Origin: Amphiscolops sp. MND2022
Lineage: Eukaryota
Length of the DNA stretch: 64,000 bases
Reading direction: 5' to 3'
Assembly (NCBI GenBank): GCA_964187785.1
Contig: OZ076418.1
Span: forward strand, 3,906,001 to 3,970,000
Below, piece by piece: positions 39,501-61,328 of this stretch. How positions within the stretch are numbered: position 1 is the stretch's first letter; every line of letters starts with the position of its first letter. Made by a program: the position numbers and the translations under genes. The notes beneath the pieces were generated by a model that saw only the letters and a program-made list of their open reading frames with translations, was not told the DNA's origin and made no database searches.

Positions 39501-40029
39501 GTTGCTGTGAAAGCCTGTATTTGAGGATTTCAAAGTTGTGTTTCAGCTCCTACTTACAAGCAGGGAGATTTTTTTTACAAAACATAGTATGGAGTTTGTC
39601 CGGTCCGCGATCGCTGGGTATGAAAACTTCATGCAGCAGGAGGACTTCAATCTCTGGAACAGATTATGTAGTGATGGCCATGCTGTTTTTATGGAGCCCT
39701 TTTGTGAGCTTTTCGAGGTTCATCTCTCTCGTCGGAAGGAGGGGGCTCATCAGCGGTTATATGAGGCAAACCGATCGGATCGTAAGCAGTGCGTCAAAAG
39801 TGGTGGTAAACCTTCTGCTGGAGGACGTTCTGAGAGTCCAACTTCGTCTGTTGTGTATGCGCCACCAGCCGGTGTTTCGAGCAGTTTCAGTTCATTTCGA
39901 CAGACAGAATGCTACACGATTCCATTCCGGTTAGTCATCTTTACTCGGACGAAAAAAGGCCATAAAGAAATGAACCTGTTGTTGTCAAGCAGAAGACGAC
40001 TAAACGAGGAACGAAGAATCTTACACTAG
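36574..40029 (+). pseudogene. Decayed antisense cargo gene of element C, homolog of the element B antisense gene
   Basis: FRRIVIAG..TDLISVWDSVREYVRSTGPPH aligns to MRRFIRIGG..VEVVEYWNDLGAYFGTHRPH of B. EKVFLQCY..SMVDFFMLRL aligns to RKLFLAEF..SVLDYLRVRL. DADFLRSCEFG..FCPELLTEG aligns to DDNLYELHFG..FDPVLVHSG. Start coordinate approximate. Confidence 0.75.
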
Positions 40030-40362: not shown

Positions 40363-43140
40363 TTAGTGAGTCGTTGTCAAGGCGTCAAAACGTCTAAAGG
40401 CAGGATTATCATTAGGTTTGGAATTCGGTCGCAAGTTGTACTTTGCTGTTTTTCGCGGATTGTATCCAACTACTGTAGGCGTTGATTTTGGGGATATGTG
40501 GACTTTCAACGAGTGGGGGCGACGTATATATGGATTATCCGCCACGTCTGTACTAAGATTTGAAAAGTCCGGCGACGTCGGCGACGGCAGCGACGCGTCA
40601 TTCGTGACTTTAGTTTGATTGTCGCTTACTTTTCGCGTCGTCTTTTCGTCATTCATTTTTGTCACTTTTTGTTACTGTTTTTGTCACTTTTTTGTCACTT
40701 TTTGTGTTACTGTTTGTTCGTTAGTGCTTGCACTTTCAGACGTCTTGTGTTTGTCAATTTGTTTTCCGAAATCCATTTCCCATGCGATTGCGTACCACTC
40801 AATGTGCGACACCTTGACGTCTGTGTCTGGGAGATATTCGTGTGATCGTACTGTGACGCCCGGTATGCGTTGTTCTGACGAGTAGGGACGTATACGTATT
40901 CGATGTAGCGTTTGTGTATATCTGGTGCCAATTTTCCGTATCGTGTATTTGTTCTTCGATAGCACTTTTATCACTACATATAGTCCCATCCAGATGCACT
41001 CTTGAAATGCGAACTTCGTCGATTGGTTGTCGGCTTTCGGGTTAAGGATATAGCAGTAGTCGTTTATTTTGAGCGGGGCTGCAGAACCGTTGCGATTGTA
41101 AGGTTTTTTTTGTATTTGAGATGAGACAGCATTATTTTGTCTTTTGCTGTCGCGCGCACTTCGTCAATTTGTTTTTGCAGCTGATCAACTATATCTGAAT
41201 TAGGCGTAGTTTTCCATTTAGGTTTGATGCCCAATTTTAAATCAAGTACGTTGTAGGGTATTCGTCCATGGAATACTGTGGTTGGTTCGCAACCTAGGGT
41301 CTCATGATATGTCGTATTGTAGTTCATGACTGCAATTTGGACATACTTTTGCCACATTGAACGTCTCTCTCCTGTCAATATCTTCAAAGCTGTTTTGATA
41401 GAAGCATGAGTTCTTTCCAAAATTCCAATCGTTTGCGCATGCTTCGTAGACGCATGACTGATTTGGATTTCTAGTAACTGCGTTATTTCCGCGACGACTT
41501 CTGATCGAAACTGTGAACCTTTATCTGAGAGGACTATTGTTGACAAATATGCATGTCTTGTCATGACATTGACAATGCATCGTCCAATTGTTTTTGCTGT
41601 TACGTTCTGCGCTGGGTATGCGAAAAGGCAGCGGGAAATTACGTCAATCCTTGTTAAAATGTTTTGGTATCCAGTAGAAGTTGGTAGATTCGGTAATATG
41701 TCAATCTCTAGGAAGTCTTCCAGTCCCAAGATGTGTTCCGTTATGTTGATCATTTTTGGTCTGATTTGATTGTTGCTGATTCTTTTGTATTTAATGCAGT
41801 TCTCACATTTCAGTACCCCTTGTTTGGTTGTTTTGGCTAGTCCGGGATAGTATTGCTTTCATCTGCACTCCTGTATCACATTTTTGACTCCTGGGTGTTT
41901 TCCCATTTGTCCGTGAATTGCTCTTAGAGTTTCCGTTATGAGGTGTTCAGGATGTAATATTTGATGATTCGTGACTTGTCCGCATTACCCGTAGTATTTC
42001 CTCATCAGTTTGCCATGTTCGACTATTAGTCTGTTTTCGTGGACTAAGAGACGCTTTGCCGTCGGATCAGTTTGTAAGAGATGTTTGTAGTATTCTTCAC
42101 ATGTCAGTTTTCTTTTGATTGCTTTGAAGACTAGGTTTGAATCTTGTTCAACTCTGATATGTGTGTCTTCCTTTATGGCTCCAAAAGTGTACGATGCGCT
42201 GTTTATTGGGATGGGGGTTTTATTTCATAGCCAATTTTATTCTTGTCGTCTCTCCGTCGCGCGCGTTTTGTCTGGCTTGCTCTTTTTGCAAGAGGATCTC
42301 CTCTCCAGTTTCGATTGTTTCGTCTGGAAAGAAGAAAAGTTGTTTGCGACGTTTGTTGACTGTAGGTTTACTTGTATCGGTCAAATTGTGATATCGTCTG
42401 TGGTTATCCTCTCGACTCTTTTTTGGGGTTAAGGTCGATTCTTAAAAGGAAGTCAGCCGCAGTATTTTTGCGTCCCTGCTACGTGCATGATGTGAAAATT
42501 GAATTGTAGCACATAGTCACATGCATTCCATAGTGTGGGAGGGATCGCCTTTGTTTGGAAAAACTGTCTTACCGATCTATTGTCAGTCATTACAAGAGTT
42601 GGTAGTGTTGTTTTCCATAGAAAATGGCTGTATTCCAAAAACGCGTTGTAGATTGCCAAAAATTCTTTGCAGTAAATTGACATTTTTAACTGAGCTGTTT
42701 AACGAGTAGACCGAGGCGCGAAAGCTAGCGTCCACCGTTAGAACGTATTGGCGTCCTGTTATTGTTTGTTTGAGAGCCAATCCACATGCTTCCGCTAATA
42801 CTGCGTTGATCGCTTTTTAATTGTCGCGTAGTTCTTCTAGTACTTTGATCTGTTTGTCTACTGTCAACAGTTCGTAGAATCCAAGCAAGTTTTCTGACAA
42901 CCGCGGGATGTAGTTGCGGGAATAATTGACAAAACCGATGTATCTTTGTACTTGCTTTTTTGATTTTGGAAATCTGACATTTGCTAGGAATTTTTGAATT
43001 TTGGGGTCTTGGGGGGCGATTTCTTGTGGTGGGATTGTTCTCCCAAGAAATTAGACTTCAGTCACTCCGAAGTGACAATTTTCGATGGTTAGTTTAAGTC
43101 CTGCCTGTCTGATGCACTCGAAAACAGCGCGGATGTTTCG
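40363..43140 (-). mobile_element. Decayed Gypsy element 'C' pol (end of RT, RNase H, integrase)
   Basis: KLTIENCHFGVTEV, VLTVDAS, KEFLAIY..VMTDN, LEIDILPNLP..DVISR..SDKGSQF..GILER, KYNLRP. Confidence 0.92.
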
Positions 43141-46100
43141 TATCATTTGCGAATTGACAGCAATTCCAAAAAGTGCAAAAACTTCAAGCAATTGCAACAA
43201 GGGTGTTCGTGGCGGTCGTGATAAAAATCTGGCCAAACGTTTTACAAAGGGATTTACGAAAATGCTAGAACTTTATCATGGTCTCAAGGACTATCTCACT
43301 GGAATTGGTTTGACGAGCTCGAAAGTCAAATTGTTTTGAAATTGAGTTGGCCTACCGTTTGAGAAAGATTTTCGAAAGTGCTAATTTTCTTGTAACGACC
43401 GGCAGTCGGCGAACAAAAAATTCAAACTTTCTAAAGAATTTTGAGAACCTGCGATAGCAAATAGAATAAATGGCCGACCTGGCTGTCGGAACGTGGGCAG
43501 GTCTTATCAGACGCTGCATTTCGATCGTTCCCTTCTCCATGATTGGAGGATAACTTTTCCGTTAAAGCTAAGACTAAACCAGTAAGTTCGGTAATTTGCC
43601 TATTCATACTAGAGAAGCGTTGGTCAATGGACATGTGATCCGAACTTCGATCAGTTTGGATGAGATTGCCATCATCTAGTTCGTTAATTTGATCTCTCGA
43701 GAGGAGGTCGGGAATGCTACATTCGCTTTCTGTATCACTAATGTGATCATCTCTGCTAGCTTTGCTCATGAATACAGGGATGGAACTTCTAGCTTGAGAA
43801 CGAGTATTTACCATTTTTGAGAAGATAGTTGGAGTTTTAAGATTTTATTGTTTCTGAAGAAAGGTTGATAGTAAGAAGATGAAATGGAATTTTTTGAGTG
43901 AAATTCTGGAATGTGGTTAGCAACTAGTCGCAATGTACAAAATGCTCTAATGGCAGCACCAATTCACTTCGTGTTAAATATGGCGATGCTGGTCACGTGA
44001 CCACTCGACCAATCATATTGTGACGTTCATTCGCACCTTGGTAGGTAATTGCGCAATTTGCGTCTAAATTTGTTGAAATATGGAAATGGTGTGTAATTAT
44101 GTTACTATGGTTACATGACTCAATTTTGGTATGATCGTTACTATGATGATGGTAATATATGCACATCACAGTACTGTAGTAATATACTCACTATATATAT
44201 ATATATGCACTATGATGTTAATGATACTACATATGTAGTTAATTGGTTAAGTGACGATACTGATTATACTTTAGAATTCTAAAATGGATGAAGTAAACTT
44301 GATGATGGTATATCAACTGCATTGTTGGCTAAATGTTATAAAATCGGTGAAGTGAAATCAGATGAGTCAACTTGATGATGATGTATTGACTGCGTCGTTA
44401 GTTAAATGTTATGAATTTGGTAAAAGTGAATCTTGTTCAACTCTGGTATGTGTGTCTTCCTTTATGGCTCCAAAAGTGTACGATGCGCTGTTTATTGGGA
44501 TGGGGGTTTTATTTCATAGCCAATTTTATTCTTGTCGTCTCTCCGTCGCGCGCGTTTTGTCTGGCTTGCTCTTTTTGCAAGAGGATCTCCTCTCCAGTTT
44601 CGATTGTTTCGTCTGGAAAGAAGAAAAGTTGTTCCTCATCTGCGACGTTTGTTGACTGTAGGTTTACTTGTATCGGTCAAATTGTGATATCGTCTGTGGT
44701 TATCCTCTCGACTCTTTTTTGGGGTTAAGGTCGATTCTTAAAAGGAAGTCAGCCGCAGTATTTTTGCGTCCCTGCTACGTGCATGATGTGAAAATTGAAT
44801 TGTAGCACATAGTCACATGCATTCCATAGTGTGGGAGGGATCGCCTTTGTTTGGAAAAACTGTCTTACCGATCTATTGTCAGTCATTACAAGAGTTGGTA
44901 GTGTTGTTTTCCATAGAAAATGGCTGTATTCCAAAAACGCGTTGTAGATTGCCAAAAATTCTTTGCAGTAAATTGACATTTTTAACTGAGCTGTTTAACG
45001 AGTAGACCGAGGCGCGAAAGCTAGCGTCCACCGTTAGAACGTATTGGCGTCCTGTTATTGTTTGTTTGAGAGCCAATCCACATGCTTCCGCTAATACTGC
45101 GTTGATCGCTTTTTAATTGTCGCGTAGTTCTTTTAGTACTTTGATCTGTTTGTCTACTGTCAACAGTTCGTAGAATCCAAGCAAGTTTTCTGACAACCGC
45201 GGGATGTAGTTGCGGGAATAATTGACAAAACCGATGTATCTTTGTACTTGCTTTTTTGATTTTGGAAATCTGACATTTGCTAGGAATTTTTGAATTTTGG
45301 GGTCTTGGGGGGCGATTTCTTGTGGTGGGATTGTTCTCCCAAGAAATTAGACTTCAGTCACTCCGAAGTGACAATTTTCGATGGTTAGTTTAAGTCCTGC
45401 CTGTCTGATGCACTCGAAAACAGCGCGGATGTTTCGTATCATTTGCGAATTGACAGCAATTCCAAAAAGTGCAAAAACTTCAAGCAATTGCAACAAGGGT
45501 GTTCGTGGCGGTCGTGATAAAAATCTGGCCAAACGTTTTACAAAGGGATTTACGAAAATGCTAGAACTTTATCATGGTCTCAAGGACTATCTCACTGGAA
45601 TTGGTTTGACGAGCTCGAAAGTCAAATTGTTTTGAAATTGAGTTGGCCTACCGTTTGAGAAAGATTTTCGAAAGTGCTAATTTTCTTGTAACGACCGGCA
45701 GTCGGCGAACAAAAAATTCAAAATTTCTAAAGAATTTTGAGAACCTGCGATAGCAAATAGAATAAATGGCCGACGTGGCTGTCGTAACGTTGACAGGTCT
45801 TATCAGACGCTGCATTTCGATCGTTCCCTTCTCCATGATTGGAGGATAACTTTTCCGTTAAAGCTAAGACTAAACCAGTAAGTTCGGTAATTTGCCTATT
45901 CATACTAGAGAAGCGTTGGTCAATGGACATGTGATCCGAACTTCGATCAGTTTGGATGAGATTGCCATCATCTAGTTCGTTAATTTGATCTCTCGAGAGG
46001 AGGTCGGGAATGCTACATTCGCTTTCTGTATCACTAATGTGATCATCTCTGCTAGCTTTGCTCATGAATACAGGGATGGAACTTCTAGCTTGAGAACGAG

Positions 46101-46728
46101 TATTTACCATTTTTGAGAAGATAGTTGGAGTTTTAAGATTTTATTGTTTCTGAAGAAAGGTTGATAGTAAGAAGATGAAATGGAATTTTTTGAGTGAAAT
46201 TCTGGAATGTGGTTAGCAACTAGTCGCAATGTACAAAATGCTCTAATGGCAGCACCAATTCACTTCGTGTTAATTATGGCGATGCTGGTCACGTGACCAC
46301 ATCGACCAATCATATTGTGACGTTCATTCGCACCTTGGTAGGTAATTGCGCAATTTGCGTCTAAATTTGTTGAAATATGGAAATGGTGTGTAATTATGTT
46401 ACTATGGTTACATGACTCAATTTTGGTATGATCGTTACTATGATGATGGTAATATATGCACATCATAGTACTGTAGTAATATACTCACTATATATATATA
46501 TATATATATGCACTATGATGTTAATGATACTACATATGTAGTTAATTGGTTAAGTGACGATACTGATTATACTTTAGAATACTAAAATGGATGAAGTAAA
46601 CTTGATGATGGTATATCAACTGCATTGTTGGCTAAATGTTATAAAATCGGTGAAGTGAAATCAGATGAGTAAACTTGATGATGATGTAATGACTGCGTCG
46701 TTGGTTAAATGTTATGAATTTGGTAAAA
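42139..46728. repeat. Tandem duplication with ~2.29-kb unit spanning element C pol and part of the element B LTR
   Basis: 42139.. matches 44428.. (offset 2289, then 2296 after a 7-bp indel); identical short ORF sets recur 2296 bp apart. Confidence 0.95.
43484..44427 (-). repeat. Partial family-B LTR created by the tandem duplication
   Basis: Near-identical to 45780-46728. Confidence 0.9.
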
Positions 46729-47496
46729 TGAAATCAGATGAAGGTACACTAACAACATCATTGATTAAATGTTCATGAAAATGACTTTACAGATATATGT
46801 GGAAAAAGTCTGGTTATTGTTAATAAATGGTTGAGGTTTGTTCAGGACAAAATATTGTAGATGCAAACATTTGTTTAAGTTTATTCAGCCAGATGTAGTT
46901 CCCTCAACTACATCTTTTTTCAGTTTACTAGTATGATTTCGTCTCATAGTATTTCTTTTCTGGATGTAGTGTACTCAGGTTCATTCGAAGTATTCATGCG
47001 TCAGGCATGACACTCCGGGTCTTTTTTGAAAAGAGCATGTGGTCGGGATGGATTGTATTTACATCAGAGTGAGGGGAGCTGAGCTCTTGTGTGTGAATCA
47101 GCAGAGTTGATTTCGGTGTTGGTTATTCAATTAGAAGTGGTAGTGATGTTGTCATGGTAACCACATCGTCGGTATTGTATTCTCGTCGTGGTCGGAAGTA
47201 AACGGTTGGTTTAATACTTCTTCTCGGCAATGGGGGGAAGTGCTAGCAGTGCGTCGAGTATTCCTCTTCGGTAGAGAGTAAATATATAGTCAATGTGGCG
47301 ATGGTAGCCACGTCATCCATTCGTGCGCGTTGTTTAGAGTAAACTAGTGAGAGTAAGAGTGGAATGACCGGAAATTAATAACGTGGCAGCGTGATATAAT
47401 TACTCGGCTTATTCGGTAACTGTTCGGAAGTAAGGTGTAGAGGAATATCGTGCGCTTTTGTAAACCAATCCTCGTCGATGCCAAATACGAGAAACA
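45780..47496 (-). repeat. 3' LTR of element B (upper boundary uncertain)
   Basis: Matches 60101-61328 and 62504-64000; the latter confirms the repeat up to 47290. Candidate start TG at 47496 follows a weak PPT (GGAAAGAAA). Confidence 0.75.
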
Positions 47497-47863: not shown

Positions 47864-50800
47864 ATGGATACAACGCCTCAAGCAGAGACGCCTCAGGCGG
47901 AAACGGATGTGGCTGCTGTTGTGGTAGCTGCAGAAGGAGTATTAACTGAGTTTGCGCAGTTGAGCTTTTCCTCGGTGGGCAGCGAATTCACGGCTGCTGT
48001 CGAAGAGACCCTATCAGAAGAACGTCAAGGGAGTTGTTGTCGCTTCGCTCGCTGGGAAGGTGACTGCTACTAACAGCGAAGTAGCCAACACTTTACTAGA
48101 AATAACTCTGTCAAATGAATTCCGTGAGTACTTCCAATTTCCAATATTTCTTTGTTTCCGTCGTTGTATGTGCTCATCTGGCTGATTTTGGTTGGATGAT
48201 GGGGGGTACCGTTTTTCATTAGGTACTCACATGTAGACTGTTCCTCTTTGTTTTTACTGTATGAAGTAGTAACCATTGGAGGTTATCTTCCTTCAGAGCA
48301 TCCTGAATTTCGTAATACTAGTATGTCGTCTAGACGGTACTGGTATTGAGACTTCTGAACTTCCCGGGATCAAATGCTCTGGATAACTAATGTTGTAACT
48401 AAGTTAGCATTATTGTATTTAGAAGAATTGTCACTCGTCGAAATTGTGGGTTTGTTGCGTAAACTGTTGGCGTCAAAACGCGGTACTGCTGCCAGTGGTG
48501 TCCTTGCATCTGCTGCTTTGGGAGATCGTCTCAGCTCTGTGCTGACGGCTGAACGAGGTATGTAGTCGGTTGTCAAGCATTAGGTTGAATATATTTCGAA
48601 TCGGTTGCATTGTTATCGTTAGTGTTTTCCAGCATGTGGAGAGGTGTATAGCATATAGGTAGGGTTAAACTTGTGTTGTAGGGACTGTTACAGGCTTGCC
48701 TGTAACTATTGTGGATCTGGAGTCATCGTTACAACGGATGACTAAGGAACTGACTGAGACTGTGAAGGCCATCATCGAGTCCAAGTTGGGGAAGTTAGGG
48801 TCAGTCTGTGCCCTTTCTGTTGAAGAGTTCGTTGGTAAATTGAAGGCAGCTGTGGAGCAACTGGTCGGAACTGCTGTGCCTGTTGGATCTGGTGTCGACC
48901 ACACATTGACGAGTGTGGCATCAGCTCAATTGGAAACACCCAGGAGTCCTCTGGATGCTGGTAGTGTTCGATCTGCTAACTTGAGCCAGATTTCTGATGT
49001 TACCACTGCTGTTGCTGGTGTACGCTCCGTTGTTTTGAAGGAGGGAAGGGTCACCACATCAGCTGCTGCGAAACCTGGTAAGAATCTCATAAGATCATGG
49101 GAGGGGTTTTAGTATTAGTATCTAGGCTAAGGATTGCTATTTACAGGGTTTTTTTGGAGTTTGTTATGTTTCTTGTTGTAGGTCGCAATAAGAAGGTGAA
49201 AACGCTGAAGCCTTCTTATTTTGTTTCTGGGGTTGTGGGAACGTTCGTCGGCTTTCCACGCCATAAACGTGTGGTTGACGGATACGCCAGATGTCTACTG
49301 TGCAAGGTCGACCTCAGCATTGCCGGACATGGCTTGTCCTCTTTGTGGGAACACTGGCGAGGTGTAGAACACACCCGTGTCGAGCAGAAGTATCGGATCA
49401 TGATGCAGATGCCGTTACTTGACAAGGCCTGTCGGCCAGTGTCAGCCGAAGAAGACAGACGAATTCGCCGAGAACGGATGTCCGAACCGCCCGTGTTTCT
49501 AGAATCGGAGTTAAGTCTCAGCGTGGACGAACGAGTTGCCATTGAGGAGGCTGAAGCGGCTGCTGGCGGAAGACCTGCTCTGGGTGGAGAGAGCACTTCC
49601 TTCTTGTGGTTGTGCCAGTTTGTCAGTAGTTTCTGCAGCACCAGTACGTACGGAGACGTGATGCAGATGATGGAGTCGTGGCGAGGCTCCATGGACACTG
49701 AACTGAGGGTTGAGTGCAGAACTTTGACTTACACACGATGCCAGGTATGTATCTACATTAGTTTGTATTGGTTCTTGTTTGTGTGTGATGGTGTTGTTGA
49801 AGCGTTGTTATAGCATGTTAGTGTATGTATCGGTACAGTTATAGGTAAAATTATATTGAAAGAGGTTGTATTTTGTTCACAGAGCCTAGTTCACTACGGG
49901 TTATACCGGTTCGTGATAGAACAACTGAATGGACTCCTATCACGTGGCAAAAGTGCGAGTCTCAACATCAGACGTCACGAGGCGGATTGGCTATGTGAGT
50001 GCCATGTGGTGTGTGATTACTCTGTGAAGACAGTTGTTCTTGGCGTAGTGGTTGGCGGGACCGGCTGGGAGAATCGGATGGTTGACAATGTTGTGCCAGT
50101 GTTGTTGAGTCTACCTCATGCTTCTTCCGTGCGGCTATACGGCACCGAGTCAGAGACGCGGATTGGTTATGCATTGGCAGCTTCTGTCGGAATTGTTGAC
50201 CCTTTGGTTGTGGGACGTGTAACACAGTTGTGGTTGTTCGAGTTAGTCAGAAAACTCTTTCTTGCCGAGTTCTCTGGGCTGGATCCTCTCAGTGTCTTAG
50301 ACTATCTGCGTGTGCGGCTAGCTTCTGTGGTTCAGGAAAAGATGCTGGATCGTCTACCTCGTATGAGACGAGTGAGTATTTGACTTTACATTTGTGTAGT
50401 ATGTGGTATAACAAAGGACATTTGGTCTGAATATTGTTTTTTTTGTGTTGGGGGGAAAGGTTTTTGAGGTGTCTATCGATTTTCGTGTTCACATGTGTTT
50501 TTTGCTATTATAGTTCATCCGGATTGGAGGAAGTGATGTGGTCACTATGGCAGCTTTGTGCGTAGAAGTGGTTGAGTATTGGAATGACCTAGGAGCCTAT
50601 TTTGGAACCCATCGTCCTCATGCTACATCTGAACTACGCTTGGTGACTCCGCTCGAGGTGCAAGTCTTCGATGATGCCATGATGCGTCCTCGTTTTGCTG
50701 TCCTACGGTTCATATTGGATACACGTTAGTATGGTTCGGTTTTGTTTGTGTTAGTGTATTGGCGGTGATTTTTTTTTGTAGTAAATTTTCGACTAAGATA

Positions 50801-52414
50801 TCAGTGGTTGTGGTGATGTGANNNNNNNNNNNNNNNNNNNNNNNNNNNNNNNNNNNNNNNNNNNNNNNNNNNNNNNNNNNNNNNNNNNNNNNNNNNNNNN
50901 NNNNNNNNNNNNNNNNNNNNNNNNNNNNNNNNNNNNNNNNNNNNNNNNNNNNNNNNNNNNNNNNNNNNNNNNNNNNNNNNNNNNNNNNNNNNNNNNNNNN
51001 NNNNNTAGGACGTTCGAAAAATAGGTATGAGCGTAAGTAAACGTGTTTCGTTCTTTGTTTGCAGTGGCTGAAACTTGTCCTCGACTGTGTAGAGGCAGCA
51101 GAGACAGTAACGTGGTTGCCGAGCGTGAGCTGTCGCAGTTCATCAGGAAGCTCATGCGCTTAGTGTATCCTGAGTCAGTGATTCCCGCAGAGTACGAGGT
51201 AGATTTGCTATTGCGATCTGTAGACCGCGAGTTCTCCGTTATAGATGACAACTTATATGAGTTACATTTCGGCCAATACTTCCGGTACGACGTTCGTACG
51301 CAACTTTCCTTCTTTTATCGATCTGTGCAGAAACTGTTGGGATCTGTGTATAAAGAACTTGCAGGGACGTGGCAACGTGGGGCTATCGACCACTTCAGTT
51401 TGACCCCATTTGACCCGGTGCTAGTGCATAGTGGATCTGAAGACCCTTGCATTGACGCCTTAGTTGGAACCTGTGCTACTCTATCCCGCAAGAACTTAGT
51501 GGACGATACCATGGCGGCAGTTATCCTAAGGCAGTATCGTGAAGTAACGCAGTTTTTCAAAAATAAGTGGACTCTGATTGAAGGCACACCTGCCGTTGAT
51601 GACGTGATTACTTTGTGGTACTCCTATCCCTATTGGTCTCGGTGTCAAGAGTTGCTGTCAGTGTTGGACATCCTATTCGGGCTTGCCGTGTTCGGAACTT
51701 ACAGTCCTAACTTTAGTGACGAATTTAATACCGCAATGCCTGTCGATACGCAGCGTTCCAGTCTAGACCTAGTCAGAAGTTGGTTCTCGAAAATGTTTGC
51801 TGGGCACACTCGTCAAACGCTCACTGGGCTTTTACGCGTTTGTTCTACCAGTGACATGCAGGTGTCTCGATTGTCTGATGAAGCGCGTTGCAAGCCCTGG
51901 GACCGCCTAATCAAGTCGAGTTTGAACGAGTCACTTGCTCTGGAAAATGCCATTTTAACGAATGATGTAGCTACTTCTTCATCAGCACCCATAGATGATT
52001 ACCGGTCGACGTATTGGCTCAACTCGATCTCGTCGAGGTAATGAGTCCCCCACGGCTGGACGACGAAGCAGCCCCATCGTCAAGAGTAGCGTCCAGCCAA
52101 AGAAAGGTGCGCGAAAACAGACTGATGTTATCTTAGGAGTTGGCCCTTCAACTTCTCCTCAGCCGGCTCCTAAGAGGAAGAAATCTATAGCTAGACCTGT
52201 GAAGAGTGCGAGTCGCAGTGTTCCGTCAACCAGTCGTGGAAGTTCTCGAACAAGGCAGTCAGTAGGGCGCAGGACAGGCGGAGTTCCCCGTGGAAGGAAA
52301 AGTTTACAATTGGCGAATGTTGGATCTGACGACGATTCTGCTGACGACATAGTTGTGAGTGGGAAGAAACGTCAAAGTCGTTTCCATTTGGATACATCGG
52401 ACTCGGGAAACTAG
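47864..52414 (+). CDS. Antisense multi-exon gene: BED zinc finger and hAT-transposase-like protein of roughly 1100 aa, with two apparent frameshifts
   Basis: Exons 47864-48059, ~48334-48557, 48682-49077, 49182-49744, 49883-50371, 50514-50724, 51065-52414. GT-AG introns have matching phases (1,1,0,0,1) from exon 2 to exon 7. ARCLLCKVDLSIAGHGLSSLWEHWRGVEH is a BED-like CCHH finger. EYWNDLGAYF, FDP and LWYSYPYWSRCQELLSVLDILFGL are hAT-like motifs. Confidence 0.8.
50822..51005. other. Assembly gap (N run) within intron 6 of the antisense gene
   Basis: Run of N. Confidence 1.
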
Positions 52415-54011: not shown

Positions 54012-56189
54012 CTAAAAACTTGTTGATTTGCGTTGCATGAATTTTACTAGTGCTGGTTTTGTATGTAGTTCATGAACGAGGAAGTCATTGTATGTTTTCG
54101 GCACTGGTGCTTTTCTAAGGCTATATCTAGTAATGTTGTTTCGTGTGATTGGTTCGGGCGTTTCAGGTGAGGATGTGGTTGGTTCCACCTCATCAGTAAT
54201 CGGTAAATCTAATTCTTCAGGCGGACTTTCAGATTCTGGTCGGTCAGTGTTATTTGTGTGAATGGTATCCCGTAATGGCTCAGGTAGAGGTGGAACCTCA
54301 TGCATTCGTTCGCGTTCGTAATAGATTGTCCCATGTTCTATGTTAATCTCTTCAGGTTCATTAACGTCTAATTCAGGTGTAATTTCAGCCGGAGTCAGTA
54401 TGTCGGGTGCAGGTAAATTTTCATTGAAAATGGTTCGATCGTCAGTTGCGTCTGGATCACTGTAATGCTTTTTCGCGTCATCATCTATGTCATCGATAGG
54501 GTCGTGTGGTACGAATGGGCGAAGCCGCATTCTATGTACACACTGTGTTCGGAATGTGCCGACTTTTCTGATGATGTAGTTTGAATGTGACAAGACTTTG
54601 ACTACTTTGTAGGGACCCTCCCATTTAAAGGAGTTGAAAGGAATTTTGTCGGACTGTGTTGCAATTTTAGGATTCAACAAAAAGGCAAAGTTGTTTACTT
54701 TCAGTGGTGATGCTTCTGCTTTTCGGTCATAGTATGCTTTATACTTGTGAAAGGCTTGGACGATATTGGTATGTGTTTCTTTAAATTTTGAGTTCAAGTT
54801 GTCGACTAACGTCCTTGTGTCAACAGCGTTTCGTGGTGGATTGAGAGGGTTGCTGAATTTCAGATCTAGTGCATTGTGAGGTACTCGGCCATGGAAGACT
54901 TCAGCTGGAGAACATTTTAAAGTCTGATGGTACGTCGTGTTGTGTGCCATTACGGCAAGGTTGACATATCGGTCCCACTGAGGACGGTCCGCAGAGACGT
55001 TTATTTTCAAAATCTGCTTTAAACGCTGGTGCGACCTTTCGACCATCCCAATAGTTTGGGCGTGTTTGATTGTTGCATGTGAGACCTTGATTCCAGCTTT
55101 GCTCATCAATTCGGTTATGACTTTTGAAGTGAAAGCAGAACCTTTGTCGGTAATGATATGTTTCGGTACATATGCATGCTTTGTGAAAATGTCTAGCAGT
55201 GCATCGACGACGGACTTCGTGTCAGGTTTGCGAATCGGGACAGCAAACAGGTAACGTGAAAAATAGTCACAAGCCGTCAGGATGTGTGAGTACCCATTAG
55301 ATCGCGGTAACTCACCAACGAGATCAATTTCAAGGATGTCTTCAGGACCGTTGCAGGGGTCATAGATCGGTTCAAGTGGAGGTACCAGAGTATTTTGTTT
55401 CACAGGTTTCGCTTTGATACATTCTTGACAATTGTTCACAAACTCTTGAACTTTTTCGGTTAGGTTTGGAATGTAGTAGCGTTTCCTTAGTTCACTTAGC
55501 ATTTTGGAAGCACCAGGGTGTCCCTGCATGGGATCGCCATGCATCGTCCTGATTATGGCTTCCGTAGGTTCTGGAGGAGCTACAATTTGTCGGTAAGCTA
55601 GGTGTCCTACATTGTCAAAAAACTGTCTGTACAAGACGTTGTTAACTACTTCAAGTCTTTTACGGTTCTTGAACAACTTTTGGAAGAAGGTACTTTCAAA
55701 GTTCACGTGGTTTGGAGGAGTCTCTTGGGCAGTAAGGATCCTAATTACACGTTGTACGTCATTACTTTCACCTTGAGCCTTAACAACTTCTGCAACCCCC
55801 GAAGGGCATACCTGATTTACCATGTGGACCTGGTCCCGTCGGTGAAATCGGGTGAAGAGAAGAGTTGGGTCAGAGGGCGTCACAAAGGGTTGTATCTGGG
55901 TCCTGATCCCTTCGACACGTCTGTTGTACTGGTCGTCACTTTCACGATGATGTTGTGGGAACATCATCATCAATGTTTGCGCTATCTTGTCCGATGACGT
56001 GGTGACATCTGGTACATCATGATCGTCAGGGATGTAATCCTCCTCGTCATCGTCTTGTTTGGGCGTCTTGGATGCTAGGTCCTTGAAAGACTGGTATCTC
56101 ATCATGTAGCTTGAGGTGGATCCTGTCTTCTGGGTTGATGTCAATCCTCGACAGGTAATCGGCAGCTGGGTTCTCGACGCCTGGGACAT
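54012..56189 (-). CDS. Integrase of element B (frameshifted from RT-RH)
   Basis: HGDPMQGH..YYIP..CQEC; LEIDLVG, CDYFSR, ITDKGSAF, GMVERSH; WEGPYKV; RYSLRK. Confidence 0.96.
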   Translation of the reverse strand: MSQASRTQLPITCRGLTSTQKTGSTSSYMMRYQSFKDLASKTPKQDDDEEDYIPDDHDVPDVTTSSDKIAQTLMMMFPQHHRESDDQYNRRVEGIRTQIQPFVTPSDPTLLFTRFHRRDQVHMVNQVCPSGVAEVVKAQGESNDVQRVIRILTAQETPPNHVNFESTFFQKLFKNRKRLEVVNNVLYRQFFDNVGHLAYRQIVAPPEPTEAIIRTMHGDPMQGHPGASKMLSELRKRYYIPNLTEKVQEFVNNCQECIKAKPVKQNTLVPPLEPIYDPCNGPEDILEIDLVGELPRSNGYSHILTACDYFSRYLFAVPIRKPDTKSVVDALLDIFTKHAYVPKHIITDKGSAFTSKVITELMSKAGIKVSHATIKHAQTIGMVERSHQRLKQILKINVSADRPQWDRYVNLAVMAHNTTYHQTLKCSPAEVFHGRVPHNALDLKFSNPLNPPRNAVDTRTLVDNLNSKFKETHTNIVQAFHKYKAYYDRKAEASPLKVNNFAFLLNPKIATQSDKIPFNSFKWEGPYKVVKVLSHSNYIIRKVGTFRTQCVHRMRLRPFVPHDPIDDIDDDAKKHYSDPDATDDRTIFNENLPAPDILTPAEITPELDVNEPEEINIEHGTIYYERERMHEVPPLPEPLRDTIHTNNTDRPESESPPEELDLPITDEVEPTTSSPETPEPITRNNITRYSLRKAPVPKTYNDFLVHELHTKPALVKFMQRKSTSF

Positions 56190-58251
56190 GGGCTAGGACG
56201 AAGTCGAATTGGAGTGCTTGGTCGCAGTAGTTCCACAACTTGGGTGGTATCCGCTTTGACTGGAAGAATCTTGTGAAGGCTTTGTTGTCTGTCATGACAA
56301 TAGTTGGTTTCTTCACGCCCCACAAGATATGAGCAAACTCGTCGAAGGCGAAGTGCATAGCCAGGAACTCTTTTGCATACATCGTGAGTGACATCTGGCC
56401 CTCAGTGAACCTTTGTGAACCAAAGGCTACTGGTGCGTACGACTTCGTCAGACCTTCACTGGTTTCTGTGTAATCTTCTATTAAGAGGACGTAACCAGCT
56501 GCGTGTTCGCTGGCATCACACATGATCACCAGTTGTTTGTCAGGAAGTGGTAACCTCAATGACATCTTAGCAGCGTTTGCCAAATTTTCGTTGATGTCGA
56601 ATATCGCGTCTTTGTGTACTTGTGTGAGTTGAAATTTTACGTCCTTTTGCAACAACTTGTACAGGGGCACTAACTTCTCGGCTAGTCTCGGTATGTGTTG
56701 CCGGTAGATTTGTACAAATCCAATGTATCGCTGAAGTGATTTCACTGACGTCGGCAGTTTAATGTTCTTCAGGAAGTCATCGATCTTCTTCTCGATAGGT
56801 CCGATGCCTTTGCTAGTAATGCTTCTACCGAGGAATTCGATCTCGGGATGACCAAAAGCACACTTCGACATCGAAAGTTTGAGACCTGCTTGTCTGACTT
56901 TGGTGAACACTGCCTCTATGTTGTCGACTAACGCTTCCACAGTGCTGGCTGCAATGCCGATGTCGTCGACGTACTGTGCACACTTGTCAGCTTTGACCAG
57001 GGGGTCCAAGTACTCTCGAACAGTACTGTTGAAAGCTGATAGAGATCGATTCAGTCCTTGGGCCAGTCTGAGGAAGGCAAACGTTCTGCTTCCAAAATTG
57101 AATGCAAGCAACTGAATGGATTGCTCATCTGCCATCTGCAAGCAGTGATATGCTTGTGAACAATCCAGTTTGCAGAAGTACCGCTTCCCAGCCATGTGTT
57201 GTGCTGCATCGGCCATTGTCGTCACTGGGTGGTTGTGTTGGTTGTAATCATTTTTTAACAAGTGATTGATCCTCCTAAGGTCCACGAGTATTCTCAGTTT
57301 TCCATTCGGTTTTCGCTGGGCGAAGATGGGTGATGAGTACTTGCTGTACGGCAATGTTGTGATTATTCCGTACTCTTGCATTAACGCCAGCTCAACTAGG
57401 AGGTCGTCTTTCAAGTTCGTCGGTGTAGGCAGACTTTGTGCATAGACTGGCTCGTCATGTTTAGGAGTCAACTTTATCTTGAACTCGGTGTTGATTCCAA
57501 TATCCAGTCTATGTCTGGCGAAGATGTCATGGTACTTGACCAATAGGGCCTCAACTTGCTGTTTTTCGTGCGGGCTCAGTATTGATTGTTCCCACTGGAA
57601 GTTTGCCAGAAATTCATGTCGTTGCTCTTCGCTCGTCGTCGGATCAAGTTTCTCCTGTTCCCTGAGTTTGACGATCTCCTCATAGATGCGTTTCTCAATC
57701 TTGTTTAGTTTTGATGGGTCGTCACACGTCTCAGGGGTATGGTACCATCGCCTGTCTGATTTGGCAGTAGGGTCCTGGAAAATCTGATTCAGGACAGCTT
57801 CAGCTTCGTCTGGGTACTGCGAGATCAGGTTCAGTTGATGGTCGGTCATCGGTTGTAGATTGGTGGCTTGTTTCGGTGTCAAAATCTTGAAGGATGCTAC
57901 AGCCGTGCCCACATTGATCGTCATCTGGTAATCTAGCGGATTGGTGATCTGGACATGTGTCCGGCCCCCCTGGGTTTCGTTGAGAGCTGGCGACACCAGT
58001 AGGTTTGTACGACGTTCAAATGCTGGTAATCCTTCAACTGTCCCAGTGATGTCGCCTAGATCACGTTCAATCACTACCGGAGCGAATACTTGCTGGTTTG
58101 GTTGGAGCACGATCTTCTGGGTGGTCTTCAATTCTAGTAGTTTATTTTTGAATTTGCCATTGACTGATCGCAATTGGAGTGTGATGTCCGGGAATTTGAC
58201 GATGTTGTTTGCGAGGTCTAGAGTGACTGAATATTTTTTAAAGAACGACAT
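56047..58251 (-). CDS. PR-RT spacer, reverse transcriptase and RNase H of element B
   Basis: YSSPIFAQRKPNGKLRILVDLR, KLDCSQAY, RLAQGL, QYVDDIG, MCDASEHAAG, KEFLA, MTDNK, NPAADYLSR. Confidence 0.97.
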   Translation of the reverse strand: MSFFKKYSVTLDLANNIVKFPDITLQLRSVNGKFKNKLLELKTTQKIVLQPNQQVFAPVVIERDLGDITGTVEGLPAFERRTNLLVSPALNETQGGRTHVQITNPLDYQMTINVGTAVASFKILTPKQATNLQPMTDHQLNLISQYPDEAEAVLNQIFQDPTAKSDRRWYHTPETCDDPSKLNKIEKRIYEEIVKLREQEKLDPTTSEEQRHEFLANFQWEQSILSPHEKQQVEALLVKYHDIFARHRLDIGINTEFKIKLTPKHDEPVYAQSLPTPTNLKDDLLVELALMQEYGIITTLPYSKYSSPIFAQRKPNGKLRILVDLRRINHLLKNDYNQHNHPVTTMADAAQHMAGKRYFCKLDCSQAYHCLQMADEQSIQLLAFNFGSRTFAFLRLAQGLNRSLSAFNSTVREYLDPLVKADKCAQYVDDIGIAASTVEALVDNIEAVFTKVRQAGLKLSMSKCAFGHPEIEFLGRSITSKGIGPIEKKIDDFLKNIKLPTSVKSLQRYIGFVQIYRQHIPRLAEKLVPLYKLLQKDVKFQLTQVHKDAIFDINENLANAAKMSLRLPLPDKQLVIMCDASEHAAGYVLLIEDYTETSEGLTKSYAPVAFGSQRFTEGQMSLTMYAKEFLAMHFAFDEFAHILWGVKKPTIVMTDNKAFTRFFQSKRIPPKLWNYCDQALQFDFVLAHVPGVENPAADYLSRIDINPEDRIHLKLHDEIPVFQGPSIQDAQTRR

Positions 58252-58253
58252 TC

Positions 58254-58913
58254 CTATGAGGATGTTCCCTTCGTCGGGAGGACCATGAATGTTTCCTCAA
58301 AGATTTTGCCGCCAATAAAAAATCGTAGGAGGACTTGTTTCCTCACGGGTACAATGTTGCCATTCGCGATTTGTACTTTGAACTCTGGGGCAGGGAGTTC
58401 TTCGAGGAGGGCTGCTGGGTGAGCCGTAAGGATTCGTCGGAGTTCAGCTTCTGAGAGGGCGCTCTGGATGGCGCCAGTGTCGAGAAGGCCAAAATTTTCA
58501 TATGCCCGGAATTGAAGTGGTACATATAACATCCTGTCTTTTTTGTTGAGTTGGAGTGTGGCACTCAACTGACGTATTTCGTACTTTGGTTTTCTTGCTG
58601 GTTTCGGTGGTTTATCTGATGTGGTTGGTGTACCAGCATCTAGTTGGTCGCGGGTTATGTTGTCAGGGGGAAGCTGGTTGAAGCTGTTGACTTCTGGTTT
58701 CTGATTCGTCATTTTCGGTTTAATGGTGTAATTGTCTGTTGAATGTCTGGTGATGACAAAGTTCGTAGTTTGTTTAGTGTAAGTCGTAGGACGGGACTGC
58801 CACCCCGTGTTGTGTCCAGTATGTAGTTGAGTCTGGGTCATAGTTTGTTGTCGTTGATTTAGTAGCGCAGTTTTGTATGTTCGTGGAGGATGACGTGGCT
58901 CTAGAAGTTTTTT
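58254..58913 (-). CDS. Pol N-terminus with aspartic protease of element B
   Basis: LLDTGAIQSAL; frame is open from the slippery site at the end of gag. Confidence 0.92.
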   Translation of the reverse strand, partial: KKLLEPRHPPRTYKTALLNQRQQTMTQTQLHTGHNTGWQSRPTTYTKQTTNFVITRHSTDNYTIKPKMTNQKPEVNSFNQLPPDNITRDQLDAGTPTTSDKPPKPARKPKYEIRQLSATLQLNKKDRMLYVPLQFRAYENFGLLDTGAIQSALSEAELRRILTAHPAALLEELPAPEFKVQIANGNIVPVRKQVLLRFFIGGKIFEETFMVLPTKGTSS

Positions 58914-60431
58914 GGGTCTTCTACGTCATCGTGTCTCTCCGTTTCCTCGACATGGTCAGTTTCGTCATTAGTGGCGTGGGACAGTTCGTTCGCGTTGTAG
59001 ACCCTGTTGTTGGTCTGTCTGAAGTCGCGGCGGAACTGTTTGTTTTCCTCGGTCGACTGTTTAGAATACGGGACGCTCCTATAGGCTGACGTCGTCGTAT
59101 TTCTGTAGTAGCACTCTCGGGCTGAGTGTCCCACTTTGCCACATATTTGGCATACCAGCTTCGGGTTGTATTTCGGTTTGACGTCTTGTGTGTTGGTGGG
59201 TTGGGCTGGTTGTTGTTGGTTGTTGGCATTTTTGTTTTGCGCTTCCTCCCTGAGGCGCTTTCGGCATTCGGCCCATTTGTGGCCGGTGATACCACAGGCA
59301 GTAGCGGAGGCATTGTCCGTCAAATTTTCGTTTCGTCTCCCGGTTTTGAGTTGGTTGGGAGTTCGATGACTGCTGTGTTGCCACATTGGGTTGTGGAGCG
59401 CTGATCTGATTGAATGGTTGTGGCGTTGCATTTGGTATGAGCTGAGCATATTGGCATCTTCGTTGGACAAACGTCCGGATTTCCTCCAAAGATGCGTCAT
59501 GTTTTCCGGCCATTGCCAATTCGTTCTGCATCTGCACGGGTAATTTGGCGAACAGGAAGGTTTCTGTTATGTCGCTGGATTTGTCACCAAATGCTTGCTT
59601 TGCGACCTTTTTGAATTTGTTCAAGAAATCATTGAACGTCTCAGCTGTCGGATCGTATCGCATTTGATCGAACTTATACTTCGCCACTTCTTTCAGGTCT
59701 TCCTTCGCGTATTCCTTCTTGAAGTAGCGGAGGACTTGTGCAAGCGTTGTCTGGCTTGTCATCTTTAGCGATTGCCAGAACTCGATGGCGTCATCTCGCA
59801 GTAAACTCTGGAAGTATGTGAGTTTCTGCTCTTCTGATAGCTTGTGTTGGTGCGGTCTGAGATGGTTGAGCAGTAAGTGCTCGAACTCGTTGTACTTCTC
59901 CCGGTTTCCTCGAAAAAGCGGGACTTGTGTGTGCAGTATTTTAGGATGCTGCACTGTGTCTGTCATCGTATCCCTCAAGTGGTGGATTTCACTGTCGATA
60001 TCGTGGAACTGGCTGGCGGGTGGCTGAGGGTGTCTGGAGGTTGATTGCTGAGTCGGGTGTGGATTCGCCAGGAAGTTGGTTGGAGGGGCTCCTCTCACCA
60101 TGTCGGAACGTGGACAGGTCTTATCAGACGCTGCATTTCGATCGTTCCCTTCTCCATGATTGGAGGATAACTTTTCCGTTAAAGCTAAGACTAAACCAGT
60201 AAGTTCGGTAATTTGCCTAATCATACTAGAGAAGCGTTGGTCAATGGACATTTGATCCGAACTTCGATCAGTTTGGATGAGATTGCCATCATCTAGTTCG
60301 TTAATTTGATCTCTCGAGAGGAGGTCGGGAATGCTACATTCGCTTTCTGTATCACTAATGTGATCATCTCTGCTAGCTTTGCTCATGAATACAGGGATAG
60401 AACTTCTAGCTTGAGAACGAGTATTTACCAT
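58901..60431 (-). CDS. Gag of element B (one frameshift near 59300)
   Basis: MVNTRSQ start; VPLFRGNREKYNEFE..LLRDDAIEFW capsid-like region; CGITGHKWAEC and CQICGKVGHSAREC knuckles. Confidence 0.93.
58907..58913 (-). promoter_or_regulatory. -1 ribosomal frameshift slippery heptamer A AAA AAC
   Basis: gag frame CCA AAA AAC TTC TAG; the -1 frame AAA CTT CTA GAG... runs open into the protease ORF. Confidence 0.8.
60089..60100 (-). promoter_or_regulatory. PBS-like site TGGTGAGAGGAG immediately after the LTR 3' end
   Basis: Follows the CA at which the other LTR copies end. No cognate tRNA recognised. Confidence 0.5.
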
Positions 60432-61328
60432 TTTTGAGAAGATAGTTGGAGTTTTAAGATTTTATTGTTTCTGAAGAAAGGTTGATAGTAAGAAGATGAA
60501 ATGGAATTTTTTGAGTGAAATTCTGGAATGTGGTTAGCAACTAGTCGCAATGTACAAAATGCTCTAATGGTAGCACCAATTCACTTCGTGTTAATTATGG
60601 CGATGCTGGTCACGTGACCACATCGGCCAATCATATTGTGACGTTCATTCGCACCTTGGTAGGTAATTGCGCATTTTGCGTCTAAATTTGTTGAAATATG
60701 GAAATGGTGTGTAATTATGTTACTATGGTTACATGACTCAATTTTGGTATGATCGTTACTATGATGATGGTAATATATGCACATCACAGTACTGTAGTAA
60801 TATACTCACTATATATATATATATGCACTATGATGTTAATGATACTACATATGTAGTTAATTGGTTAAGTGACGATACTGATTATACTTTAGAATACTAA
60901 AATGGATGAAGTAAACTTGATGATGGTATATCAACTGCATTGTTGGCTAAATGTTATAAAATCGGTGAAGTGAAATCAGATGAGTAAACTTGATGATGAT
61001 GTATTGACTGCGTCGTTGGTTAAATGTTATGAATTTGGTAAAATGAAATCAGATGAAGGTACACTAACAACATCATTGATTAAATGTTCATGAAAATGAC
61101 TTTACAGATATATGTGGAAAAAGTCTGGTTATTGTTAATAAATGGTTGAGGTTTGTTCAGGACAAAATATTGTAGATGCGTGCATTTGTTTAAGTTTATT
61201 CGGCCAGATGTAGTTCCCTCAACTACATCTTTTCTCAGTTTACTAGTATGATTTCGTCTCATAGTATTTCTTTCCTGGATGTAGTGTACTCAGGTCCATT
61301 CGAAGTATTCATGCGTCAGGCATGACAC
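60101..61328 (-). repeat. 5' LTR of element B, truncated at its outer end
   Basis: Near-identical to 45780-47008; diverges after catgacac at 61328. Confidence 0.88.

Follow-up and report, generated by a model that had tools for sequence, protein, structure and literature searches.

Structure of the locus

The window (that is, the whole 64,000-nucleotide stretch of DNA analysed here) contains a 15.5-kb Ty3/Gypsy LTR retrotransposon on the minus strand and, in antisense orientation within it, a seven-exon gene that spans 47864–52414 on the plus strand (Table 1). The two LTRs are 1.23 kb long and 98.1% identical, have TG..CA-type ends and are flanked by GTGGC and GTGGA, which resemble a 5-bp target duplication with one mismatch. 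Pfam matches between 60431 and 54012 give the domain order gag–PR–RT/RNaseH–IN that characterizes Ty3/Gypsy elements (Metaviridae). The gag open reading frame (ORF) begins 330 nt inside the 5′ LTR, and the portion designated 'gag 1–110' recurs in every LTR copy. In the window copy, the pol frame is interrupted where PR meets RT and again where RT meets IN; relatives have a single open frame of 1,651–1,677 aa. The spacer that separates the two convergent stop codons has 87% identity to that of a relative (L032). The retrotransposon is itself nested within another Gypsy element at 40.9–43.5 kb. A search with hidden Markov models for exons 4 and 7 gave no match to either exon in the second Gypsy element at 36.5–40 kb.

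Table 1 Features of the retrotransposon and of its antisense gene (window coordinates)
Feature	Position	Strand	Remarks
3′ LTR	45780–47012	−	TGTCG...ATGACA on the plus strand; borders from alignment of three LTR copies
Conserved non-coding block	47268–47479	+	Upstream of the antisense gene; ~210 nt
Exon 1	47864–48123	+	Contains the ATG; frame break near 48045 in window copy
Exon 2	48423–48557	+	AG/GT borders, in frame; tblastn match in L033
Exon 3	48682–49077	+	Low complexity, weak conservation
Exon 4	49182–49744	+	Most conserved exon; zinc finger inside
Exon 5	49883–50371	+	Presumed N-terminal half of degenerate RNase-H-like core
Exon 6	50514–50724	+	Alignment A5, 77% column identity
Intron 6	50725–51064	+	Encloses assembly gap (N run) at 50822–51005
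Exon 7	51065–52414	+	Stop TAG at 52412–52414; alignments A1 and A3; frame break at ~52000–52040 in window copy
Spacer between two convergent stop codons	52415–54011		Non-coding; no ORF >105 aa
pol (protease region, RT, RNase H, integrase)	54012–58841	−	Pfam RVT_1, RT_RNaseH, Integrase_H2C2, rve
gag	58901–60431	−	CCHC knuckle; Pfam zf-CCHC, DUF1759 below cut-off
PBS-like site	60083–60100	−	TGGTGAGAGGAGC..., TGG start, directly after 5′ LTR; read at LTR border
5′ LTR	60101–61328	−	Alignment with 3′ LTR

The antisense gene lies between pol (with the IN stop at 54012) and the 3′ LTR (ending at 47012), that is, in the aORF-3R placement; its ATG is 850 nt from the LTR boundary at 47012/13, and the gene is contained entirely within the internal region. 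A first-pass annotation had proposed a seven-exon antisense gene with in-frame GT–AG joins at five junctions, and our own exon model bears this out and extends it: one open frame runs from exon 1 to exon 7 across all six junctions, and each intron is of the GT...AG type. The intron downstream of exon 3 (phase 1) is kept in a relative (L033), and the two introns that flank exon 5 are both phase 0 and both conserved. Intron 6 has both of its splice signals outside the assembly gap (the donor GTTAGT at 50725, 97 nt to the left, and the acceptor ...TTTGCAG, which ends at 51064, 59 nt to the right), and exons 6 and 7 are joined in frame, in phase 1. At the same position and in the same phase, six gap-free copies carry a single intron of 132–228 nt, without an extra exon. 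The N-terminal part encoded by exon 1 shows 37–68% conservation in five subfamilies, and the exon 7 product consists of an all-alpha domain of ~315 residues and, after it, a disordered basic tail in which the motif GRRTGG-K/V-P is conserved.

The first reading of the window copy needs two corrections: the frame changes once inside exon 1 and a second time close to the end of exon 7. In the relative L033, a single frame covers both halves of exon 1, and the contigs from four public runs differ from the window by an indel at 48045. The open frame of exon 7 comprises 334 aa here versus 454 aa in a neighbouring copy of 99.7% identity and 456–469 aa in most relatives; across most copies it is 450–470 aa long. 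The window copy is thus slightly broken, and the design is intact in other copies.

Linkage, conservation and selection

Whether the cargo travels with gag–pol was assessed through the coordinates of exon 7 and IN matches: among the 62 best IN matches in the genome, at least 42 lie 2–3.3 kb from an exon 7 match on the opposite strand, in convergent orientation. IN–RT–PR–gag is convergent in all five loci that cover the downstream side, and exons 4–7 stand behind an LTR piece in five of the seven loci that cover the upstream side (four of these also with part of exon 3); two loci (L031 and L035) are truncated or rearranged. The same layout is kept in relatives of 22% identity in a public assembly, and the exon order is kept in two further assemblies. 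The owner retrotransposon is present in hundreds of copies. As most copies and related families carry the gene, it is not a one-off transduction. Around the gene, the best flanking inverted pair measures 23 nt with 78% complementarity, and about three such pairs would be expected by chance in 7 kb (our own binomial estimate); inverted repeats are therefore at chance level only, in line with the earlier reading, which had noticed no terminal inverted repeats (TIRs) or 8-bp target-site duplication (TSD) around the gene.

Intron positions and phases are identical in six diverged copies or subfamilies, and nucleotide identity is 61–75% in exons and 50–59% in introns, with 53% for shuffled sequence. 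This conservation excludes a chance origin of the gene model. The dN/dS check that the first-pass annotation had called for gave 0.03–0.14 wherever dS was not saturated, which indicates strong purifying selection on the protein. A search of public runs turned up no RNA run that covers the stretch; the four runs that do cover it yield DNA-like contigs with the introns in place. As judged from these sequence comparisons, the gene is real, coding and selected, and linkage, constant layout and selection together uphold the view that it is an integral part of an LTR retrotransposon lineage.

Zinc finger and upstream conserved block

Exon 4, with a mean column identity of 85%, encodes a finger of the form C-x2-C-x16-H-x5-H (at about 49292–49372) in which C37, C40, H57 and H63 are invariant in six subfamilies. 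For the BED finger proposed originally, the backing is one of pattern: the invariant CCHH spacing may agree with the BED consensus. The family zf-BED (PF02892) gave no match at E ≤ 1; among the 147 relatives of exon 4 at E ≤ 0.01, the best 120 showed no Pfam domain.

The non-coding block upstream of the gene has a mean column identity of 80% across six subfamilies, in which introns are at the level of shuffled sequence. It contains the palindrome GTGGC-N7-GCCAC, ACGT-core motifs and a TATA-like TATAAT; no covariation in support of an RNA structure and no Rfam match were found for it. We regard the block as a candidate promoter, 5′ UTR or protein-binding site. Among the segments compared in this half of the element, the zinc-finger exon is the most conserved part of the protein and the block is the most conserved non-coding stretch, and it is tempting to speculate that the two form a protein–site pair.

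Likeness to hAT transposases

A derivation from a hAT transposase, as first proposed, finds tentative backing at the level of fold, but not in any significant sequence or profile match. No Pfam family was matched at E ≤ 1 by any exon or by 147 relatives of exon 7, with the hAT dimerisation family (PF05699) absent from the window's exon 7 and these relatives, and a sequence search of the PDB with profiles of exons 4 and 7 gave no match. When the exon 7 family was aligned by hhalign with 11 bona fide hAT C-termini from this genome, the result was not significant (E = 0.87), and the sole stretch aligned was the W...(Y/F)P motif of the hAT C-terminus. A feature search of the ESM Atlas with exons 7 and 5 gave no usable match.

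Structural modelling covers exon 7 only, and the RNase-H-like part is presumed. With a 10-sequence alignment, the AF2 model of exon 7 was unusable (pLDDT of 36); with a 147-sequence alignment, pLDDT rose to 71 overall and to 80–93 for residues 1–209. Exons 5, 6 and 7 folded as three chains without alignments gave pLDDT values of about 30. Foldseek matched the exon 7 model to AlphaFold clusters with E-values down to 9e-5, and 10 of 30 cluster rows carry names of the hAT type (HAT C-terminal dimerisation, ZNF862-like, ZMYM1-like or Ac-derived); the top AlphaFold-cluster and Atlas matches are unnamed proteins. The fold comparison that had been recommended gave a divided answer: Hermes, the hypothesis set beforehand, came first among 48,161 chains with twice the aligned residues of any neighbouring row, whereas Foldseek on PDB and Swiss-Prot models returned no hAT protein and the hhalign comparison fell short of significance. 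The domain order and lengths fit a hAT transposase, with Hermes as the point of reference. In alignment A4, no Asp is invariant within the first 130 residues of exon 5, and the catalytic Glu, aligned by eye at either plausible position, is replaced by Val/Ile or is variable. The protein thus seems to resemble a disabled hAT transposase whose catalytic residues appear to have been lost.

Proposed explanation and alternatives

We suggest that the locus is probably best explained as an antisense accessory gene of a Ty3/Gypsy lineage with a degenerate hAT-like DNA-binding product. Following the established logic for antisense cargo, the six introns would survive in the genomic RNA because the gene is antisense, would pass through it unspliced and would be copied at each retrotransposition. 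Transcription probably starts from an internal promoter of the gene's own, for which the block at 47268–47479 is a candidate, and the predicted product of ~1,100 residues would comprise a variable acidic N-terminus, the C2H2/BED-like finger, a degenerate hAT-like body and the basic tail. The likeliest role for such a product may be to bind DNA in the nucleus, sequence-specifically and without catalysis, in the service of the element, whose transcription it could activate or protect or whose integration it could guide. Insertion targeting, anti-silencing and binding of its own LTRs, as first proposed, would likewise be putative roles. A more far-reaching proposal, which we consider possible but would not presume, is that an animal Gypsy clade depends on a self-encoded, antisense, catalytically dead transposase-derived DNA-binder that recognises the conserved block or genomic targets and controls transcription, chromatin or the site of integration, and that this module is swapped between element lineages by recombination. 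In that case a class I element would have turned a class II transposase into a domesticated tool of its own.

Alternatively, a real gene with a true linkage to the element may have an origin other than a hAT transposase. Its product would then be a lineage-specific zinc-finger protein with an all-alpha domain, which would resemble the hAT insertion domain through a common helical arrangement. Such an origin would agree with the failure of sequence and profile searches to match hAT or BED significantly, with the Foldseek results on PDB and Swiss-Prot models and with the unnamed best matches in the AlphaFold clusters and the Atlas. It is rather unlikely, however, in view of the rank and alignment length of a protein (Hermes) that had been named in advance, the hAT-type names in a third of the top AlphaFold-cluster rows, the hAT-like order and lengths of finger, body and tail, and the fact that the one motif picked out by hhalign belongs to the hAT C-terminus.

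We think it distinctly improbable that the protein opposes retrotransposition, either as a repressor by which the element limits itself or as a weapon aimed at competing element lineages, and is retained because the host then bears a lower cost or because rivals are kept out. Repression by an antisense gene has a retroviral precedent in HBZ, which acts against Tax. Elements with an integrase 88–90% identical to that of the window carry exon 7 types that are either ~80% or ~50% identical to the window's, and this combination of nearly the same integrases with divergent cargo would also fit exchange or diversification of a specificity module under this scenario. Our results fit activation and repression alike, however, and subfamilies share the most conserved parts (finger exon and upstream block), unlike what lineage-specific exclusion would entail. 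Whatever the direction of its effect, the fact that integrase types and cargo types do not match suggests a modular exchange of accessory genes among retroelements, as in viruses.

An independent DNA transposon or host gene nested in one element (nesting being common in the window, where the present element itself lies inside another Gypsy element), or an antisense transcript that acts as RNA only, is close to refuted by the order LTR–gene–convergent pol, which is constant in every locus examined and recurs at no fewer than 42 of the 62 top IN matches, by TIRs that do not exceed chance and, for an RNA-only role, by the strong purifying selection on the protein.

Relation to known systems

Plant LTR retrotransposons have for 25 years been known to carry antisense accessory genes; to our knowledge, the origin of these genes has not been recognised. 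In plant Tat/Retand Gypsy elements (Grande gene23, RIRE2 and Retand) and in fungal Boty, most copies, in related families too, have an antisense ORF in the interval from pol to the 3′ LTR, and its function is still unknown; the Grande gene has its own promoter and a nuclear protein product (PMC7264820, PMC11963269). The gene described here shares with these ORFs its place, its orientation and its presence in most copies and related families. However, published descriptions of those genes show one ORF each and no conserved introns, whereas this gene has six conserved spliceosomal introns; the domain of the plant ORFs (TRP28/Transposase_28, PF04195) is confined to flowering plants, whereas no Pfam match was found here; and their hosts are plants and fungi, whereas here the host is an animal and the product has a predicted hAT-like fold and a C2H2/BED-like finger.

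With hAT transposases and their derivatives (Hermes, ZBED, DAYSLEEPER, ZNF862 and ZMYM1), the product shares an N-terminal CCHH finger and the length of the body; the best structural match of its modelled all-alpha domain is the Hermes insertion and C-terminal region, and, as in domesticated hAT copies, catalytic residues have apparently been lost. Unlike hAT elements, it has no PF05699 or PF02892 domain and no TIRs or TSD, and its owner is a retrotransposon rather than the host genome. HTLV-1 HBZ (which is spliced) and HIV-1 ASP are antisense protein-coding genes near the 3′ LTR with nuclear regulator products (PMC11963269, PMC7264820). Both resemble the present gene in coding for a protein antisense to the element close to its 3′ LTR, but they are short genes that begin within that LTR and have no relationship to transposases, whereas the coding part here is wholly internal and its transcription is predicted. 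VANC of VANDAL elements, an element-encoded, sequence-specific accessory DNA-binding protein proposed to act on the element's own copies, is comparable by analogy only: it comes from a DNA transposon, and its sequence is unrelated.

If the favoured explanation holds, it would provide a concrete origin for an antisense accessory gene, in which one class of mobile element recruited the DNA-binding machinery of another. It would also define a testable activity, that is, sequence-specific DNA binding mediated by the zinc finger, for which the 210-nt block is a ready candidate as the protein's binding site or, otherwise, as the gene's promoter. The conserved introns, for their part, show directly that antisense cargo escapes splicing in retrotransposition.

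An intron-bearing antisense gene under protein-level selection

Seven + strand exons separated by GT-AG introns lie in the interval from the 3′ LTR of a Ty3/Gypsy element to its integrase stop (54012), and one reading frame is kept across all six exon junctions; our own exon model confirmed the gene coordinates of the first-pass annotation. On comparative grounds, we regard this antisense gene as real. Subfamilies (that is, diverged copies of the family) in which synonymous sites are saturated share the positions and phases of their introns as well as the splice motifs, and nucleotide identity is 61–75% in exons and 50–59% in introns, versus 53% for shuffled sequence. Selection on the protein is seen in dN/dS values of 0.03–0.14 where dS was estimable, and exon 4 has a mean column identity of 85%. 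The four public sequencing runs that match the stretch gave DNA-type contigs with introns retained.

Features of the element and its antisense gene (window positions)
Feature	Position	Strand	Basis or remark
Ty3/Gypsy element		-	Pfam domains
gag ORF	60431-59079	-	Pfam
CCHC knuckle ORF	59500-58901	-	Pfam
Protease-region ORF	58841-58254	-	Pfam
RT/RNase H	58251-56047	-	Pfam
Integrase	56189-54012	-	Pfam; stop at 54012
LTRs	45780-47012; 60101-61328		98.1% mutual identity; ends TGTCG...ATGACA
LTR segments with the first 110 gag codons	60101-60431; 43485-43814; 45781-46110; 62505-62834
Conserved non-coding block	47268-47479		between LTR and ATG
Antisense gene, exons 1-7	47864-52414	+	own exon model
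N run	50822-51005		within intron 6

Intron 6 has its donor (GTTAGT) at 50725 and its acceptor (...TTTGCAG) ending at 51064, both outside the N run; exons 6 and 7 join in phase 1 and in frame, and in six other copies this intron is 132–228 nt long, matching in position and phase and holding no intervening exon. In one relative (L038), exon 6 is duplicated (6390–6596 and 7452–7658) within a 1.17-kb intron 5. Contigs of two of the public runs (X3 and X4) include a variant lacking exon 4, in which the exon-3 donor (49076) is joined to an AG at 49864, 18 nt upstream of exon 5 (GT..AG, 787 nt); its short side is only 27 letters, and it may reflect a chimeric contig or a DNA copy with a deletion.

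A pyrimidine tract and CAG immediately 5′ of the ATG hint at an upstream non-coding exon. The 210-nt conserved non-coding block is 80% identical over six subfamilies, above the coding exons at the nucleotide level, and contains the palindrome GTGGC-N7-GCCAC along with a TATA-like box and motifs with an ACGT core. It showed no covariation and no Rfam match, and we read it as a candidate promoter or 5′ leader of the antisense gene, or as a candidate protein-binding site.

Linkage of the gene to the element

Genomic context shows that the antisense gene is part of the Ty3/Gypsy element. Of 855 candidate matches to exon 7 in this eukaryotic genome of 1.07 Gb, at least 124 were scored, and these fall into classes about 81, 68, 64, 50 and 41% identical. 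Twelve 10-kb loci were surveyed, five covering the downstream and seven the upstream side: a convergent IN-RT-PR-gag order was found in all five of the former, and exons 4–7 in order (with part of exon 3 in four), with an LTR piece 2–3 kb upstream, in five of the latter. The other two lack the LTR piece; one (L031) is 5′-truncated, with exons 5–7 only, and the other (L035) holds two gene copies head to head (3031–6115 against 6344–9329). In two subfamilies the LTR limits put the gene start some 1 kb into the internal region. Judged by coordinates, an exon-7 match lies 2–3.3 kb away on the opposite strand for at least 42 of the 62 best integrase matches, a lower bound because only part of the exon-7 candidates was scored. 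Profile HMMs built on exons 4 and 7 found no match in the neighbouring Gypsy element (36574–40029) at E ≤ 10, so any kinship with its content would lie below what sequence comparison can detect.

The arrangement recurs in public data. In assembly ERZ26859043, exon-7 relatives of only 22% identity are convergent to IN-RT-PR-gag, and the exon order is likewise retained, with gaps of intron size, on contigs from two other assemblies. All 203 family matches among 1.8 billion representative proteins are unnamed ORF fragments, and the family is therefore unannotated.

Integrase type and cargo type (that is, the type of the antisense gene) are discordant among elements: integrases 88–90% identical to that of the window occur together with an exon 7 of the roughly 80% type or of the roughly 50% type, and those at about 80% accompany types of 81, 68 or 52%. 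This mismatch suggests that lineages have exchanged the cargo module.

Origin of the protein

The first-pass annotation derived the gene from a hAT transposase with a BED finger; some fold matches favour the hAT part of this reading, but Pfam, PDB sequence and hhalign comparisons do not. Pfam gave no family for any exon, for 147 relatives or for 120 exon-4 relatives, PDB sequences gave no match, and hhalign against genuine hAT C-termini from this genome was not significant, the sole aligned stretch being a W...(Y/F)P motif. An AF2 model of exon 7 (147-sequence alignment) is an all-alpha domain with pLDDT 80–93 for residues 1–209. Against 2.3 million AlphaFold clusters its best E was 9e-5, and 10 of 30 rows were named HAT C-terminal dimerisation, ZNF862-like, ZMYM1-like or Ac-derived; Foldseek on PDB and Swiss-Prot models returned no hAT protein, and the ESM Atlas gave two unnamed eukaryotic clusters (TM 0.58). 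Structural support for hAT is thus moderate, and we consider a hAT origin of the protein likely.

Exon 4 encodes an invariant finger, C-x2-C-x16-H-x5-H, which resembles the BED pattern. Exon 5 has no invariant Asp in its first 130 residues, and two plausible catalytic Glu positions, aligned by eye, are Val/Ile or variable, which makes an active transposase unlikely.

Proposed role and nearest known systems

We suggest that the antisense gene would be transcribed from an internal promoter and its transcript spliced, yielding a nuclear protein made up of a zinc finger, a dead hAT-like body and a basic tail. This protein may bind DNA to the benefit of the element, helping for instance with transcription, with protection of chromatin or with targeting; that it represses or competes instead is a live alternative.

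The closest known counterparts are antisense aORFs found in plant Tat/Retand elements, which have a TRP28 domain and unknown function, and of fungal Boty (PMC7264820, PMC11963269). The gene described here differs from these in host kingdom, in protein family and in its conserved introns, none being described for the aORFs.

The retroelement and frame breaks in the window's copy

A PBS-like site starting TGG lies 3′ of the 5′ LTR, and the sequences flanking the element (GTGGC / GTGGA) resemble a 5-bp duplication. The gag ORF begins 330 nt within the 5′ LTR, its frame running across the PBS-like site, and the first 110 gag codons are therefore present again in each LTR. These codons show 46–63% protein identity in the LTRs of diverged subfamilies (tblastn), suggesting that the LTR end is coding. 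A second whole-element copy (L002, G000:C10:3972279-3976223), 99.7% identical and in the same orientation, is found 16.7 kb rightward of the window's copy, just past the window edge, with its 3′ LTR beginning at 62504.

In the window's copy, exon 1 is frame-shifted near 48045, where contigs of the four public runs differ from it by an indel; both halves are contiguous in a single frame in one relative (L033). A frame shift near 52000–52040 leaves 334 aa of exon 7, versus 454 aa in L002 and 456–469 aa in most relatives. Its gag-pol carries frame shifts within gag (near 59300) and at the PR/RT (near 58252) and RT/IN (56047–56189) borders, whereas relatives have continuous frames, with a single pol frame of 1651–1677 aa. 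The window's copy is thus slightly decayed or contains assembly indels.

The palindrome GGTCACGTGACC, at about 46286–46300 in the 3′ LTR, is kept in the LTRs of all but one of the six subfamilies and is possibly a transcription-factor site. A 2.3-kb tandem duplication (42138–44430 versus 44427–46732, 98.8% identical) has as its unit the junction at which the host element, in the RT of another Gypsy element, meets the initial 950 nt of the 3′ LTR; either a rearrangement or an error of assembly could account for it.
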